Positions 1-59,996 of a DNA stretch of 64,000 nucleotides are shown in pieces. Source of the stretch: Eukaryota sp. TZLM1-RC (Eukaryota; Protista; Metamonada: BaSk clade). The stretch is taken from positions 992,001 through 1,056,000 of the forward strand of contig JAUPSS010000003.1 of the NCBI GenBank assembly GCA_040285825.1, in the 5' to 3' direction. Below the pieces are notes generated by a model that worked only from the letters and a program-made list of their open reading frames with translations, searched no databases and was not told the DNA's origin. The first letter of the stretch is position 1. Every line of letters begins with the position of its first letter. Made by a program: the position numbers and the translations under genes.

Positions 1-3000
1 ATTCATTTATATAACGGGTTTTGTTTATAAAAATACTACCTAGAATTTTTATTTCATGTTTGTAAGTGGTAAAGCTACACTTGGGTAGGCCCAGGTTAAT
101 TCTAAAACGTTTGACGCGTTCTAGGACCATACCTACTCTGGATAAAAATTCATCCAAAGTTGAAGCTACTATCATAACATCATCGATATATATAAATACA
201 CCTTTGGAATCAAAAATTTCCATCATCATGTTTTGGAAGACTGCAGGAACGTTCTTCAAACCAAAACAAGCCTTTTTAAAACTGATCGACATCTCTGGAA
301 TTAATACGGTAGTTTTATCAATATCCTCTTCTGCAATTTTGAGCTGCCAAAATGCCTTAGGTAAATCTAGAGTTGTTATATAATTAGCTTTACCCAGAAA
401 TTCTAAGAGGTCGCTAATCCTGAGCAAATTTGCCTCTACAGGTTTAGTTAAATCGTTTACTCCACCAATACCACTAAAATCGCCAGTTAATCGTGGTTTC
501 CTGTGATCATGGTAAATCACTAGACAGATGGGACTACTGAATTGAGACTTTGCGGGCACAGCAAGCTCATTACGGATCAATTCGTTAAAAATTTCCTCGG
601 CTACCGGTTGTTTTTCTGGGTTTAACCTTCGAGGTTTCCTTTTGACGTCATAAAATGGAATGGTCATCGGCTGACAATCAATTCCATCCGGGGTAGGTAG
701 CCCACTAAATACATCTTTGTATTTTTTGGATAGCACGACTAGGCGTTCCTCATCCCTGATGTCATCCAGGCATATTCGACAGCCCAACTCATCTAAATCA
801 TGTCTGAATGTGGAGTGCCCAAAATCATTACCTAAGTTTGATTTATTACTCAATTGTTCAATGAATCTAATTGGTTGACAAATTTTATTATCAAACTCAC
901 ATTCAGCATTTAAGACGGTGCGATGTTCGCGATCCAAATTAATATTAAAACCGTGCTTCGTGCGTAGCCCCAAGGTTTGTAATAAGTCTCTTCCGATCAA
1001 AAAATTGTTGGTACCAGGAATGATCTGGAATTCAATCCTCAAAAACACTTGAGTATCCAAGCTATCCACAATGAGAGCCAGAACACCATTTGCACATCCT
1101 AAGGTCGTGGAGCGAATACCATTTGCCGATAGGTATTCGACGGTTTATTGTGTTTGACCGTCATATTACATTTTAGAGCTAATTCCATCGATAATGCTGA
1201 GAATGCAGCTCCATTATCGATTTCGCCTTGTTTTTTTACATTGTTAATTGAGCAGTTCAACCAAAGTTTCCGGCTAGAACTTGTTTGGTCTCATGTCACC
1301 CCGGATAGTCTAACACTGTGGATAGAACGCACATAATTGGATGAATCCCTAAATTTTTTTAATGGATTTTGGTGTCTATAATTTGTATAAACTTTTCTCA
1401 TTTTGTAAATGGTATTGTTCGAATTGTGTGTAAAGTTCAAAGACGTATATTCAACTGATTTATTACTACTACTAAACATTTTTCGTTTGTCACCCGGACC
1501 ACCTCTTCGTTTTTTGTTGATTAGGTCTACCTACTACTGAGAAACATTTGTTTTCAGCGTGTCTATTTGTATTACAGATGCTACACCATTGCCCAGGAGG
1601 AATTTGCCTGGCTTGATGTTTAAGTTTACCACTACCCTTGGAATTTTTAGGGTGCATTCTTGAGGAACCTCTTGACTGGCTTAATCCCCTAAATGAAGGT
1701 TTGTTACCAAATAATATTTTTACATTTGCTAACTCCAGATTTTCAAATTCTTTCAATTTCTGAACAAAGGCTTGTCCAAGAGCATATATGACATCGCCCA
1801 GTTTACCAACGTTCCTGCTACCTTGAAAAAATTCATCAATTCAAATCCCGTAGGTATTTACGAGTTGGTCGTTAGTTTTCTTGTTGATTTCCTCTAAGAT
1901 TCTCCTAGCGGAAAAACCAACAGAAGGCTGCTCATGGGTTCTCGGCATTGCGGTTGACCGTCTTATTTTATATATAAACTGCTTTATAAATGTGTTCCAA
2001 ATCACTTCGACAGATTTTCGACTAATTTTAGAAATACCCAGTCGCGCTCAAGGCTTGATTTACCTCGGAAATGGTTTTATACTGAGTGTTTAATAACAGG
2101 AATTCCCAGATCTCATGGTCACTTGAATTAGTTCCCAAAGGCTCTTCACGACCTCCTAGACGAGTTTGCCATTGTATTAAAACGGTACCTTCGATCATTT
2201 CGCTAACATGAAGAGGGTCAATCTCATAGAACATGGTTCTAACGAAGTCATATTCATGTATAGCTTGCCCATATTTAGTGAAGAATTGAAAGGGTCTAAT
2301 AGTTCCATCGTGGTCTCTTTTAGTCTTTGCCCAGTTGGCGAAATTGACTATAAATTCCAAAATCTTCTTGGAGTCGAATCCATCGTCCAGTTTCTTCAAT
2401 TGTCTTTTTTTTTCCTCGATTTTTTGATTAATTTTTTCCTCATCGGTTACAGGTGTATCATATAACCCTGTGGAAAAGACAAGAGGATCTCTCGGTGCTG
2501 TAGGTGCTAAAGAGCTGCCTGTAGCTACCGGTATAGTTGATGAGATTGATGTATTTTGTCCAAAAGACGGAATCGCTGACATTCTTCTTCCTGGAAATGA
2601 TGCTACAGAAGGAGTTAAATACATATTGTTCGCTTCCTCCGAAGGTAGCGTTTCACTAAAATCCAGAATGTATTTCAATTTACGAGATTCGTCTTGATCT
2701 GGGAGTTTCTGGGTTTCAGGTTTAAATTCAGCACAATCAGGGGCGCTCGTAAACCCTTAAGGAATCCCTTCCACATGGTGTTTATAAAGTAAACAACTAC
2801 CCTTGATCAACACACTGTCGAGATCTCTTGGGTCGGGGTAACTATCTACCCATGCCTTGAGTTTGGCAATCGATGCGTCAGGATACACCAATTTAATCTT
2901 GTTGGGTCCGACTCGTTGTACTTTCAATTCAATGATTTTGGTTCCCTTAGTTCTAACAAAGGTTTCTTTATGATGAAATTAATATAGTATCACCTCTATA

Positions 3001-3961
3001 CGCAAAAAATCGACCTCCCAACAGCAGCAGAACGTCGATCATTCTGTCTTTTGGGTAAACATTTTCAATTAGAAAATGCCTCACCGTTACTCTGAGTAAA
3101 CGACCCTTTTGATGGTGAAAATATATCTTGGCAATCCAAAACAACCTATCCTCATACTCATCACTTCCGCGGATATGATGTTTTCCCGTGCGGAGTCGTT
3201 CATCAGGAATGGCATTCTTGTGCCAAAATGTAGGTTTCTGAGTAGCTGTTTGGTACTTTGCACGCGGTGCGTCAAAGTAACAATTTCCAGGATCTTCAGC
3301 TACAAAACTAACAGAGCTCTCTGAACATTGATCTAATCGATCCAAAAAATCAACATTTTGATCTTGTTGTTCGAGAACTAAGTCGTCCTGCGTGTATCCA
3401 CGTGAACTGCCAAATAAGAAAGGCCAACGTTTTTTTAGAAACTCTTCTCTTTTCTCTACACAAGAAGAATCCTCAATGATATTAGATTCATTCTCGATGG
3501 CAGTTACAAACTCATCATCGCTCCAATCTCTGAAATCATCAGGTGGGTTGGCGATGATGGACTGAAAGAAGTCTTCAACCACATAGGTGACTCTATCCTT
3601 CAATTCTCGACGGTACCACTCTTGAGAAGTGCGGTATTCAGTTTCCGTCCATTCAATATCAGGAGGGTCAGTAGAGGGGTTATCACCATCCCCATCTCCA
3701 GTCCCATCATTCGGGTTAGATGTTCCCGTCTGAGAGGAGGTAACAATTACAGAAGACGAGTTTTCATGAGCTTCTTTAGACGGGAAGGGAGGAGGGTCGT
3801 GTTGGAGGTATAATTTCCATCTCCTTCCGTCATTTAAAAGGGAAGCTGTTGGCTTTTCACACCAAAAGGTAACTTTAACTCATTAGGAAGAATGTTATCC
3901 GGGTCAAAGGTGTAATTTCCCATGTTACTCTCCTTACGAGGAGCATTCTTCACAAGTGAAG

Positions 3962-4108
3962 TGCTTCTCTCCTCAGAGGGAGGACTTCTCTTCCGTGAGG
4001 AAAGACTCTCCTCAGAGGGAGGACTTCTCTTCCGTGAGGAAAGACTCTCCTTAGATGGAGGACTTCTCTTCCGTGAGGAAAGACTCTCCTTAGATGGAGG
4101 AATACTCT
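3962..4108 (-). repeat. 42-bp tandem repeat (~3.5 copies) encoding SKESLSSRKRSPP-type units in the gag N-terminus
   Basis: Repeated gagggaggacttctcttccgtgaggaaagactctcc units on the + strand. Confidence 0.9.
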
Positions 4109-4163
4109 CCGTGATTGGAAAGATGTTACTGCTAACATCATGGTCGTTTAAGCCATTAATTAA

Positions 4164-4359
4164 TGTGGCCTGTGACATAATGGTAACAGCAAAAAGGTAA
4201 GATAACTTTACTAAAATTCACTGGCCCTTATAAAGGCCATCACTAGTGAAGTCTATACTAGATTAATTGTCCACAGTACAACAGGTGATATTTACTGCTA
4301 TTAGATTGTATAATTCCGAGTTGTTGTTGATTCTGTCTCCTCTAATATTGCAAATGACA
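4164..4359 (-). repeat. Putative 5' LTR of element 1 (~196 bp)
   Basis: Starts TGTCATTTGCAATATTAGAG (compare TGTTAGTCTTTACAATATTAGAG of element 3) and ends ...GGCCACA before the palindrome. The partner LTR is not in the window, so boundaries are inferred by analogy. Confidence 0.65.
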
Positions 4360-7462: not shown

Positions 7463-8501
7463 ATGTCATCTTCTTCGCGCTCTAAACGGATAGGATCATA
7501 TCTCTTAGGTCCTAAACTTGGTGAGGGTACCTTTGGTTGTGTTCGAAAGGCCGTCCATCAACCTACAAATTCTAAAGTAGCCATCAAAGTCTTGGAGAAG
7601 TCCAAGATTGTTGATGAAGCTGATGTGAAAAGGATAACGCGAGAGATACGTATTCTACGCTCTCTCAGCCACTCACATGTAGTACGATTACTTGAAGTTA
7701 TTGACTCTCCTCGCAATCTCTACTTAGTTACAGAATACTGCAGTGGCGGAGAACTGTTTGACTACGTAGCAGCTAACCGTCGTCTCGATGAAGCGGAGGC
7801 ATGTAAAATGTTTCGTCAGTTAGTTGAGGGTGTGGACTACTGTCATCGCAAAAAGGTCTATCACCGAGACTTAAAGTTGGAGTATGTTGCATTATTTCGG
7901 TACTAATCACATAAACATCCTGATGGATTCTGAGAAGAACATTAGGATAATCGACTTTGGTCTTTCCAACAGTATTAACGGTAATGAGATGCTTAAAACT
8001 GCTTGTGGTTCACCTTGCTATGCTAGCCCTGAGATGATTGCCGGATCACGGTATGATGGGAAATCTACTGATATTTGGTCTTGTGGCATCATTCTCTTTA
8101 GTATGTTGTGTGGTTATCTTCCTTTTGAAGATCCTTCCATCCCAAATTTGTATTCTAAGATTCTCTCCGGCACCTTCACAATTCCGTCCTTTGTGTCATC
8201 TGAAGCCAGTGATCTTATTAGGAAACTCTTAACCGTGGACCCTCAACGCCGTTGCACTATTGATGGAATTCGAAATCACCCTTGGTTTAAGAAATTTAAC
8301 CAAGTCTTTGCTCCTCAAGAAGACGATCCTGATGAAGTCTTGGATGAAGATATTCTGAGAGAATTAACCTCAATTGGTATAGACTCTGAACATGTCGTTT
8401 CTTGTCTTGAAAGCAAAAAGTTCAACTCTGCAACTTCTGCCTATATGCTCTTGAGTGCAAAGAAAAGAAAAGGGCAAAGTATATCACTTTCCAAAGTGTA
8501 A
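7463..8501 (+). CDS. AMPK/SNF1-related Ser/Thr kinase with UBA-like tail; exons 7463-7881 and 7913-8501
   Basis: GEGTFG, VAIK, HRDLKLE/N, DFG, TACGSPCYASPE and DIWSCG motifs. The two ORFs join into HRDLKLENILMD only by removing 7882-7912. Confidence 0.93.
7882..7912 (+). other. 31-nt spliceosomal intron, GT...AT boundaries
   Basis: GTATGT...TACTAATCACAT; removal restores the kinase catalytic loop. Confidence 0.8.
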
Positions 8502-24151: not shown

Positions 24152-25499
24152 ATGGACCCCGTTGACCTCATATGCCCTGATCGTTGGAAACATCGACAAC
24201 CACTGTTTTTAGGTCAAATAAAAGCAACTTCGTGGAGCAACAAAACTCAAGAACTGTTCTGCTTGGAAGACATCATAGTAACCCTTGATTCCAATGGATC
24301 AGCAGAAGCTTATAGTAGAACAACTCTACAACACCTCTGCTCACTTCGTATCAACGATGACTATATAGTACGATCTCTGTTCACACATACACTGACAAAA
24401 TCGGTGATCACCGTAACAACCCTATCTACCGAGTCGCACTCTGCATTGAGAGTGGTTTCATTCCCTTTAGAGTTTGTTGAACTAACTCACAATCATTAAC
24501 AGCAGTCATATACGCAAAGGTGATGCCCCCAGTACGCCTACTTTCATGTTTACAACAGAAATTTTAAAGTACCCAGGATTCGTGGAGTTTGACTCAAGAG
24601 CTAACCGTGCAATTACTTTCAGTGCTCCAGATCAAGTGTATAGAGTGTGGGACCTCAGTACTTACTGTGGATTTCTCTATTCGTTGTCTGCGTCAGATGT
24701 GCTTGAAGTCAAAATAAAGTATGTAATTTATTATTCAGCATACTAACCTCAGTTACGACAGACTGGTTGTGTTTCACAAACCAGATTCCGAATTCTATCT
24801 CAACATCAAAGTGTATGACCTTCAATATGGAAAATTGTTGTGCACAAGTAGACTTAAGCTTGAGTCTCGAGGCTATCCATTCAATGTAAATCCGACAGTT
24901 CTGTATACCGAAAGTGTTGGTGATTCAATGTTTTGTTACTGTCCAATTGACAATAATAATGGTATTTATATCTCAAAAAAACATCTAACTATAGGATATG
25001 TAAAACTAATTAATATAAGAAAATCAACATCAATTAGAATTCAATTGCAAAGAAACAATCAACCACTGAGTTGTCTTCAAAGTGTGGCTTCATTCATGTA
25101 TCTTCATTCAAATCATCGGTATCGTCATCAACAAATTTCTCTAATCGTATAATAATTGCCTTTGGTCGCAATGGAAATACTCTCTTGTTAGACGATGAAC
25201 TGAATATCGTAGCCAAACTCTCAAGTACAGTACTTGATGGCCGGTTTGATGAACACTCGTGTACGATATTAACCGATGACGAGTCATTGTTGGTGAGTTT
25301 CACTGAGAATAAGGACAAGGAAATAGTTGTTAATTGTGTTGATGCAACGACTGGAAAGCATCAAAGGGAGTATTCGATAGGGAAAGAAATGCAAAAAAGA
25401 AACATTCCAAGAAATGGTACATGTATAGCATACCTAAAAGAAGAAAGAGTGTTTGTGGTAGGACATTTGGATAACTCTGTCTCTATTTGGCGACTTTAG
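24152..25499 (+). CDS. WD40/beta-propeller-like protein (plant/protist family with the LKxPGFVEFD motif), 4 introns; start uncertain
   Basis: IVRSLF...SVITV, HIRKG, LKYPGFVEFD...YRVWDL..Y...LYSLS...V.EVKI. The ORF pieces join through introns 24472-24505, 24719-24752, 24962-24994 and 25119-25150. Confidence 0.8.
24472..24505 (+). other. 34-nt intron GT...AG
   Basis: GTTTGT...CATTAACAGCAG; restores FPLD-HIRKG. An AG 3 nt earlier is also in frame. Confidence 0.8.
24719..24752 (+). other. 34-nt intron GT...AG
   Basis: GTATGT...TACTAACCTCAG; joins the frames of ORFs 24546 and 24769. Confidence 0.88.
24962..24994 (+). other. 33-nt in-frame intron GT...AG
   Basis: GTATTT...ATCTAACTATAG; same architecture, stopless 3n intron. 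Confidence 0.7.
25119..25150 (+). other. 32-nt intron GT...AT
   Basis: GTATCG...CTCTAATCGTAT; restores SNHR-IIAFGRNG. The next downstream AG is out of frame. Confidence 0.72.
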
Positions 25500-42970: not shown

Positions 42971-45900
42971 CTACTTCTTCCCCTCCTTTCGACTGTCTCT
43001 TTTAGCTCTTCTACGAGGTTGCTTGCGAGTAGGTTGGCCAGCAGGGGGTCGCGACTTATTAGTCTGGAGGAAAGCTTGATAGGCCTTAGTGCTCTTAATG
43101 CGGTCGACAGGCTCAGTGCCTCGTACATCTCCAGCATATACAACTTGACACTCGTTACCATCTTGGCTCAGAACTTTTAATAAAAGATGTTCCTCAGTAT
43201 CACCTGAGGCCACGATACGATGAAACTCATCATCAGTGGGTTTATCAGAATGGTACAATTTGCATTGAGAAATGCTAGCCTTAGTTTCGACACCTGTGAT
43301 CAAGTTCTTTATTAATAAAGTTGATTTGCTAGGTTTGTCGATGACCAGATATGGGCCCAGATAATTCCCATGTAATTTGGAGTTACTAAATGATTTGAGG
43401 ATTAAGCATCCAACTTTTTATAGCAGGTTACTCGTGCTTGGCTTCTCCTGCAGCGATTTCGATGTTTGGGTGATTTATGCTTTTTTTCGTTCTTCTTTCA
43501 ATCGATTGAATTTAGATTGGATATCCAGAATGAAAGGAACCTCAGTGGTAGCCTTTTCGATGGTGGAGAAAATTGATAAAGGATCAGCTCTGGGACTGAC
43601 GTCTGACCCAAACATAAGCTCGAATGGACTGAAACCTGTGACAGAGCTGTTCGAAGAATTCGTTAAGAGTTGTACGTAAGGAATGTATTTTGACCAGTTG
43701 TCATAGGCGTTAAAATCGATTAGGAGATTCCTAAGATCTTGTAAGATGACTCTACGACGTCGTTCAACTAGGCCATTTGATTGACCGAAATTTGGAATAC
43801 TGTTCGTCACGTCGATAGGCAAGAATTCGCAGAGTGATTTAAACACGTTGTTGGCGAATTCTGGGCCGTTGTCACTGTGAATGCTGTATGGTATAGCGAA
43901 GATTGCACACACACTCCAAATCAAAGCGTCGTCTGTCAGCCTTGCGTTTAATTCTTTTAGGTGTACGAGGATTGTATACCGAGTAAACTGTCCACAAAAA
44001 CTAAGATGTACTTATTGGTCTCTTGATCTGGAGGGTGAGGGCCAATGGTAATCCACGTTCAACCTCGCGAAGGATTTGTCAGCCCAGAGAGATCCGGTGG
44101 ATGGAGTGATAGATTTGGGGACAGGTGCCGTTTTCTGACATGATGGACAAGAACGCACGTGGTTCTTCATATCATCAGTCATACTGGGCCGGTAGTAGTC
44201 GGTAGAGGATAGCCTGCGTAAACACTCAGACATACACCGCCTGATACATAACCGTGAATGATCAAGAGCGTGTCGTTGATGAGTAATGACGGGATGATTA
44301 TCTTGCCTGATTTGTTAAGGTAGAGGTCAAGATGATTGACGGAACAGTTATTAAATGAACGTTCGTGAGCTGCAACAGCTTGTCTTTGTTCTGAACGGAT
44401 TCTACTCAACCATGGATCGATCATGGGGATTGCAGATGCACATTTCTCTTTTAAAATGAGGATTTGGTGAGTATCCCGAAGGTTGTTTGAATCTGGAAGA
44501 GCAGAGTCGTCTGATGGATTATAGTTTCTGATATAATAAATTGGGTGAAACCGTTCATATGTGATCTCGCTCGCTAAAAAATGAGCGTTGCTTGTGTTTA
44601 TGCGTACAGGATCGGTCGTTGGGACCTGTCTGGATAGTATGTCTGCCCAGTAGTTGTTCTCCCCCGAGGTGTGTACCAACTCGAAGTCGAACTCACTGAG
44701 TATTGGTAACCAACGTGTGACAATTCGATTCTTATCAGGAACTGTTACCAGATATGAGAGGTTCCTGTGATCTGTGAATATCGTTAGCTTCCTACTTTTG
44801 AAATAGCTCTCGATGCATAATTCTGTTAGGATAAGAAGTATAGCGTAAAGCTCTTCTGCATCGTTGACCAATTCTTTTGGGAATCGGAGAGAATCCTGCT
44901 GAAGAAACTGATAGGTCTGATAGGTTGAGAGGAGTGCCATTGTGTTCACAAAGATCATATTCTTCCCAGATCACGCCGCCAATAGCAAAGTCTGATGCGT
45001 CACAACTAATAAGGACACCGTTATCTGCGGGGGGTAAACTCAATGGCATATTCTCTTTTATGAGTTGTTTGATCTTGTTGAAACGGAGTTTATGATCTGA
45101 GGTCCACTCGATACGGTGGGGGTTTCCTCTAGTAAGCTCGATGATAGGAGATATGATTTCGGATATGTATCCGAATTCAGCGAGTCTCTAATGTAGTTGA
45201 TGGATCCTACAAAACTTCTGACGTCTTTCACTGTCTTAAGAGCTGGAAGCTCGACCAATCCAGTTAGTCGTGAGGGATCGATTTGGCGTGTACCATTGAC
45301 GAAGATACTACCGATAATCTTGATTTCATGATCTTTAGACTTGAAATGGAATTTAGGTAGGCCAAGGCTGACCCGTTTTTCTTTAGCGCGGAAGAGGACG
45401 GCTTTGCGCCTGTCGATGAATTCAGGAAGGGTATTAACTATGATAATGACATCGTTTATGTAGATAAAAACGCCTCCGATGCTAAACATGTTGGACATTA
45501 CGTTTTGAAACACTCCGGGGACGTTCTTGAGAAGGAAACATGCCCTGTTGAAGTAGCTAATACTGCCACCTGGAATGCTGAATGTGGTTTTCTCGATGAC
45601 TCTTTCGTTGATCTTGAGTTGCCAAGATGCTTTTGGGAGATCAAGTGTTCAAATGTAATTAGCTTGAGATAAGAACTCTAATACATCAGAGATCTTTGGA
45701 AGGTTTGGAGCGATGGAAATAGTGTTCGCATTGACTCCATTCGGACCATTGAAATCGCCTGTAAGGCGTGGTTTCCGATGATCAGGATAAACTACAAAAA
45801 CAACTGGGGAGCTGAATCTGCCATTGGATTCTGTGGCGAAACCAGATTCGATTAACTCACCAAAGATTTGGTTGGCGATATTTAGTCGTTCAGGGTTTAA

Positions 45901-59820: not shown

Positions 59821-59843
59821 TGGGAAAGAAATCTTTGTCCTTT

Positions 59844-59996
59844 AGTCTTCGCCTATATGGCTTAGATCAAGTGTAGTATCTGTTCTTATCAGTTTGACAG
59901 CTGATACGTCCTCTTCGGAGGGCTTTCTGTCATCGTATTTGTCTCCACCTTCAATGCTCCCGGCCTTACACCTTTGCTGGGTTGCGTTGTTGGTTC
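59844..59996 (+). ncRNA. U2: U2 snRNA
   Basis: GCC-UAUAU-GGCUUAGAUCAAGUGUAGUAUCUGUUCUUAUCAG...CUGAUACGUCCUC matches the conserved U2 5' domain including GUAGUA; stems IIa, IIb (UUCG), IIc and a 3' stem-loop are present. Confidence 0.96.

Follow-up and report, generated by a model that had tools for sequence, protein, structure and literature searches.

Genes and introns of the window

The window analysed here is a stretch of 64,000 nucleotides (JAUPSS010000003.1:992001-1056000, assembly GCA_040285825.1) from Skoliomonas litria TZLM1-RC (Metamonada), an anaerobic, free-living, flagellate metamonad of soda lakes. On its forward strand lie an AMPK/SNF1-like kinase gene with one intron, a DUF7899 (PF25463)/WD-like gene with four introns and a U2 snRNA gene. 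The sister genomes GEM-RC1 and TZLM3-RCL (RCL) were used for comparison, and homology searches were run exon by exon.

The kinase is encoded by exon 1 (7463..7881, identified by PDB alignment) and exon 2 (7913..8501), which flank a 31-nt intron (7882..7912) of the form GTATGT...ACTAA+TCACAT, that is, with GT-AT termini and an in-frame TAA. Exon 1 ends in HRDLKL plus the first two bases of a Glu codon, and exon 2 opens with the third base of that codon followed by NILMD. In the comparison to human AMPK alpha-1 (chain 6c9f_A), the alignment of exon 1 reaches K141 of HRDLK and that of exon 2 (from 7914) begins at N144; the two positions between them are taken up exactly by L142 and by the split codon E143, with no gap. 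Excising exactly 31 nt (7882-7912) yields HRDLKLENILMD, in which HRDLKLE|NILMD corresponds to AMPK residues 141-144. As read from the genomic DNA, the catalytic loop is restored solely by excision of 7882-7912, and the sole alternative pair of boundaries giving an identical protein is a one-base shift with TA-TA ends. The public model P0151 (335 aa) has the identical exon-intron structure, GT-AT intron included. A paralog on another contig, P0152 (L003:10001-11051), shares this intron; its copy differs by a single substitution and likewise ends in AT. The two paralogs differ by a dS of 0.09 with a dN/dS of 0.47, which would indicate mild constraint only. P0152 reads HRDLNLEN and NFG where the window kinase has HRDLKLEN and DFG, with the GT-AT intron still present; given the change of DFG to NFG, this copy may be decaying or encode a pseudokinase.

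The DUF7899/WD-like gene was delimited mainly with its GEM-RC1 ortholog P0002 (409 aa), which is encoded without introns. Using tblastn, P0002 gives four blocks on successive frames: residues 13-114 at window 24176-24481, 113-190 at 24510-24737, 175-294 at 24733-25119 and 295-409 at 25152-25496. A search for homologous proteins with P0002 returned P0002 itself as the sole match. Exon 1 (24152..24471) covers Pfam profile positions 38-116 and P0002 residues 13-114, and exon 2 (24506..24718) covers profile positions 121-187 with 58% identity to P0002 residues 113-180. Exon 3 (24753..24961) corresponds to P0002 residues 175-249 in tblastn. Exon 4 (24995..25118) comprises 41 codons (...LQSVASFMYLHSNHR) and is treated as intron by the public model, and exon 5 (25151..25499), matching P0002 residues 295-409, reads IIAFGRNG...VSIWRL before the stop.

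Intron 1 of this gene (24472..24505, 34 nt, GTTTGT...ATTAA+CAGCAG) accompanies a frame change from 2 to 0 and has a tandem CAG-CAG end, with an ACTAAC further upstream at 24481-24486. The public model P0001 reads PLD|HIRK across it; the RCL counterpart (L002:2948-2978) is in the same codon phase, and GEM-RC1 has no intron there. Intron 2 (24719..24752, 34 nt, GTATGT...ACTAA+CCTCAG) also comes with a frame change and is part of P0001. A start one base later, at 24720, would lose the GT. The RCL ortholog of intron 2 (L002:3189-3220) ends in TTAA+CTTTAG. Intron 3 (24962..24994, 33 nt, GTATTT...TCTAA+CTATAG) is in frame and free of stops; it matches the sole internal gap (11 residues) relative to the intron-free GEM-RC1 ortholog and is absent in RCL. 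Intron 4 (25119..25150, 32 nt, GTATCG...TCTAA+TCGTAT) is the second GT-AT intron of the window: P0002 aligns up to residue 294 at 25119 and resumes with residue 295 at 25152, without a gap. At the level of sequence, such gap-free homology demonstrates both the existence and the boundaries of these introns.

The number of introns in this gene is four in S. litria (24152-25499), two in TZLM3-RCL (positions 1 and 2; L002:2619-3899) and none in GEM-RC1 (L001:3001-4230). This difference among three Skoliomonas genomes points to recent gain or loss of the introns. In RCL, the first exon is missing from the public model P0004 (288 aa), although intron 1 there (L002:2948-2978) is GT-AG.

The public model P0001 (349 aa) has a single 230-nt GT-AG intron (24962-25191) in place of the 33-nt intron and the AT-ending intron. 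Its acceptor is the first AG downstream of intron 4, which is 41 nt away at 25190-25191. We compared the frame of exon 4 (24997-25119, ending ...SVASFMYLHSNHR) to the two orthologs. Local alignment scores were 56 (P0002) and 69 (P0004), and none of 2000 shuffles (mean 20, maxima 44 and 39) reached them. A 38-nt GT-AG intron at 25000-25037 that also restores the frame was considered as a rival and rejected, as the frame it discards is the conserved one; the frame it keeps scores 22 and 29 (p 0.34 and 0.07), which is chance level. The 230-nt intron of P0001 costs the protein about 55 conserved residues, and the expectation of an earlier note on this DNA that standard predictors would mis-annotate such genes is borne out in the DUF7899 gene.

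Positional pattern of the introns

The same note had described five introns of 31-34 nt whose last base lies exactly 6 nt after the branch A, two of them ending in AT. All five are present at these lengths, and each has an A at -7 (6 nt before the last base), the last ten bases being CTAA+TCACAT, TTAA+CAGCAG, CTAA+CCTCAG, CTAA+CTATAG and CTAA+TCGTAT. Both AT ends (2/5) lie in conserved coding genes, with junctions fixed gap-free by homology. Starts of the window introns (GTATGT, GTTTGT, GTATTT and GTATCG) are of the metamonad GT(A/T)(T/G)GT type, and those of the two GT-AT introns (GTATGT at 7882-7912 and GTATCG at 25119-25150) resemble their AG-ending neighbours.

For a wider view we assembled 16 introns: the five of the window, eight from S. 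litria at L003, L004, L009 (on JAUPSS010000002.1) and L010, two from the RCL ortholog and one from GEM-RC1. In this small sample, several members of which come solely from public gene models so that the counts are indicative, intron length is 26-34 nt and an A stands at -7 in 14 of 16 (background A 0.28; binomial p ~1e-6). Position -6 is a pyrimidine in all 16, position -9 is T in 12, and position -2 is A throughout (16/16). The last base is G in 14 introns and T in two, never A or C. All but one start with GT (15/16), the exception being a candidate at L009 whose AT-AG ends come from alignment (see below). The positional pattern is thereby demonstrated at the level of these sequences.

In the larger sample, the exact 6-nt rule that holds for the five window introns is not universal. 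Intron 1 of the RNase H2A gene (L009:1474-1504) has its sole plausible branch A at -8. The gene at L010:16356-17232 (minus strand) probably carries three introns of the GTATG type in a span of 200 nt. The third of these ends in CTAA+CCTATTAG, which places the branch A 8 nt from the end (-9), shorter in-frame ends being excluded by a stop. With 14 of 16 introns at -7 and these exceptions, the 6-nt spacing is a strong mode (sometimes 7-8) and not an absolute ruler. The further proposal that the acceptor is chosen by distance rather than AG scanning is not supported as a rule of distance alone: all 16 introns share the A at -2, and they end only in G or T. As far as sequence can tell, the acceptor pattern is a preferred spacing combined with an invariant -2 A and a last base relaxed to G or T.

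Skipping of a nearer AG in intron 1 of the DUF7899 gene had been offered as a sign of a ruler. The nearer AG does exist (24501-24502, 3 nt upstream of the one used), and use of the distal AG agrees gap-free with P0001 and with both orthologs. However, it lies merely 3 nt past the presumed branch A, and at such a distance skipping would be expected of any spliceosome. The branch assignment in this intron is also open to an alternative: a perfect ACTAAC is found 20 nt from its end, and the best branch motif of the RCL ortholog is 16 nt from the end. Because a better motif exists upstream in both, the A at -7 may not be the branch in either, and we treat that of intron 1 as a putative branch with a second candidate present. 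A covariation between a T after the branch A and the AT end was considered but is not supported, as half of the AG introns (7 of 14) also have a T at this place (e.g. CTAA+TACAAG at L010). The multi-intron public models at L010 and L011 gave no unique intron placement from DNA.

The RNase H2A gene (L009:1438-2339) deserves separate description. Its public model (269 aa, with the start placed at 1469) appears to be in error at two places and lacks the DE and VD catalytic motifs. Translation probably begins at the ATG at 1438 (MASNLVVCGIDE), followed by the 31-nt GT-AG intron 1474-1504 and then AGRGPVLG. Further downstream, 'YVDTLDM' in frame 0 and 'AGKPSFY' in frame 1 both align to residues 139-149 of human RNASEH2A, which requires the removal of exactly 31 nt, with a start within 1838-1847. 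The segment 1842-1872 (ATATGT...TTTAA+TTGCAG) is the sole option with intron-like ends and is our candidate AT-AG intron.

Other segments of the window were also inspected. At 2968-4178 (minus strand), a public gene model of 383 aa and unknown family calls for the excision of 59 nt; neither GT-AG candidate (3937-3879 or 3879-3821) has the usual 3' motif, and a 35-nt alternative (3862-3828) has TTTAA+6 but a CG end. Blind scans of the window for further introns relied on a GT start, on CTAA at set offsets and on the rescue of ORFs; their matches were mostly noise. An AT-ending candidate at 46516-46484 (minus strand) was dropped, as it is inside a degenerate LTR retroelement with RT_RNaseH and rve remnants. 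On the same strand, the segments 47682-47642 and 42833-42791 are near-identical and intron-like (41-43 nt, GTAAT...CTAA+CCCTAG), with a telomere-repeat-like end; they too sit in a degenerate LTR retroelement, its RT_RNaseH and rve remnants being at 43478-44958.

Splicing machinery and competing explanations

The U2 snRNA gene (59840..59996, forward strand) matches Rfam RF00004 over its full length, scoring 92.6 bits where the gathering score is 46. It has the canonical branch-pairing GUAGUA, which fits the motifs CTAAC, CTAAT and TTAAC, and stem-loop III is missing. In the Rfam scan of the 64-kb window this was the single U2, and it is of the major type. No stable fold was found in the introns and their flanks (z-scores -1.3 to +0.8; the two AT introns, flanks included, gave 0.75 and 0.83), and the ends of the AT introns do not pair with each other, which argues against a structure-based excision.

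We consider it likely that these are U2-type spliceosomal introns of the fused branch point/3' splice site kind, about 27-34 nt long, in which the identity of the last base is relaxed. With two of the five window introns ending in AT, the last intron base would count less here than in other eukaryotes. According to the mechanism that we propose, GUAGUA of the U2 snRNA would pair with a YTNAY branch motif, and after branching solely the nucleotide 6 nt (rarely 7-8) past the branch A would reach the catalytic centre. The 3' site would then be set by the very short tether together with the invariant -2 A. Such tight geometry could relax the identity of the last base, G being usual and U tolerated, and GT-AT introns would hence be spliced accurately and persist in essential-looking genes. 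Removal from the RNA, the identity of the branch A and the structural cause of the tolerance of U at -1 are what we infer from the sequences.

The AT-ending segments could instead be retained, or spliced to the next downstream AG, with shortened or truncated proteins or pseudogenes as the outcome. P0001 with its 230-nt GT-AG intron (24962-25191) is what such a reading would predict, and the missing DFG aspartate of the paralog P0152 would suit a pseudogene. Nevertheless we find it improbable, because the segment dropped by P0001 is an open frame with significant similarity to both orthologs (0/2000 shuffles). In the kinase, retention meets the in-frame TAA, and the next AG (7943-7944) would produce a 63-nt intron that is out of frame. 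The deposited models P0151 and P0152 themselves contain the GT-AT intron, which would not be the expected output of an ab initio GT-AG predictor. Still less probable is an error of assembly or polishing that turned AG into AT, a reading to which we give almost no credence. In its favour, the assembly is Nanopore-based with Illumina polishing (10.1101/2023.05.03.539051); against it, the identical AT occurs in two diverged kinase paralogs on separate contigs (dS 0.09) and in an unrelated gene, and a systematic G-to-T error limited to the last intron base is implausible.

Between these two in probability, and in our view very unlikely, is a reading in which the boundaries lie one base over (TA...TA) or the excision is not by the major spliceosome (U12-type or euglenid-like non-conventional). 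The base following both AT introns is A, and the split codons tolerate G or A (GAA/GAG, CGA/CGG), so TA-TA boundaries would give the same protein. However, the shift would put the conserved A at -8 instead of -7, and it would forgo the GT that starts 15 of 16 introns and makes both AT-ending introns begin like their AG-ending neighbours. U12-type introns have the 5' consensus (A/G)TATCCTT and the branch consensus TCCTTAAC 10-15 nt from the 3' end. The AT introns begin with GTATGTTG and GTATCGTC, which do not match this consensus, and the 6 nt that separate their branch A from the end fall below the U12 range. They do share with the U12-type a 3' site set by branch distance and a tolerance of non-AG termini, and U12-type introns likewise show strict branch-to-3' spacing and variable terminal dinucleotides (PMC6679479); the 5' site and branch consensus differ, and the U12 spacing is far longer. 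The non-conventional introns of euglenids and diplonemids are no better match, as the ends do not pair, no stable fold is seen, and a GT start and a branch motif are present. The U2 in the window is of the major type only.

Comparison with known introns and significance

Major-type splicing with a fused branch point/3' site, as preferred above, has precedents. In Giardia, Trichomonas and Yarrowia the branch motif lies at a fixed distance from the terminal AG (PMC2483917). Branch-to-3' spacing does not vary in Giardia and Spironucleus, and Trichomonas splicing is lost once the branch motif is displaced by 2 or 7 nt (PMC6679479). Yeast can do without Slu7 at a spacing of <=9 nt (PMC10158995). 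Given the fixed spacing in other metamonads, Skoliomonas would join the organisms with fused branch/3' site introns, with a spacing one base shorter.

The likeness to Giardia, Spironucleus and Trichomonas, whose 3' motif is (A/C)CT(A/G)AC-ACAC-AG, includes membership in Metamonada, an intron-poor genome and short uniform introns, along with a GTATGT-type 5' site, the lack of a polypyrimidine tract and an anchored CTAAC-type branch motif (PMC2483917, PMC6679479). The spacing differs, however, being branch A + 6 in Skoliomonas and + 7 in the other three. In Skoliomonas the stretch from the branch motif to YAG is not conserved and has no ACAC, and the branch motif itself (YTNAY) is looser. The terminal AG that belongs to fused introns of metamonads is missing from 2 of the 5 window introns. 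The earlier note stated that Giardia keeps AG, which is nearly true: a single GT-AT intron, 30 nt long and spliced only rarely, has been reported there. Giardia also has a CT-AG intron (PMC10711314). In contrast to this one GT-AT intron of Giardia, an AT end is found in about one per 6-7 sampled Skoliomonas introns, in conserved coding genes. Yarrowia lipolytica and other hemiascomycetes share with Skoliomonas a constrained spacing, with ACTAAC 2 nt before AG, as a convergent feature of intron-poor genomes (PMC2483917), but they belong to an unrelated lineage, have long introns (median ~200 nt) and keep the terminal AG. Fixed branch-to-acceptor spacing is therefore already known from Giardia and Trichomonas; the frequent AT ends in conserved genes, as predicted from sequence, appear to be new, and we did not find them in the literature. 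The Skoliomonas genome paper, in which gene prediction used RNA-seq hints, makes no mention of intron peculiarities.

A stronger reading, which is a real possibility but in our view falls a little short of an even chance, is that exon ligation by the major spliceosome of Skoliomonas is independent of a terminal guanosine. A minimal loop of 4 nt from the branch A to the invariant -2 A would define the 3' site; AU would then be the end of 15-20% of introns and perhaps the start of a few (candidate at L009:1842-1872).

GT-AG-only pipelines harm gene models in Skoliomonas genomes, as the predicted structures of the DUF7899 and RNase H2A genes suggest. With gene models damaged in this way, proteome-based claims of absent or truncated proteins in the lineage need a check against non-canonical introns.

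Few signals of eukaryotic gene expression are as conserved as the terminal AG of U2-type introns, and in the solved yeast and human spliceosomes the terminal G is read via pairing with the first intron base. If our reading is true, Skoliomonas, as a free-living eukaryote with routine use of AU at a ruler-fixed position, would serve as a natural test of how strict the terminal-G check is under a minimal tether. It would also offer a natural system for the checking of the first and last intron bases in step 2, possibly with changes in Prp8, Prp18/Slu7 or U6, and it would extend the trend of intron-poor lineages toward a rigid 3' architecture.
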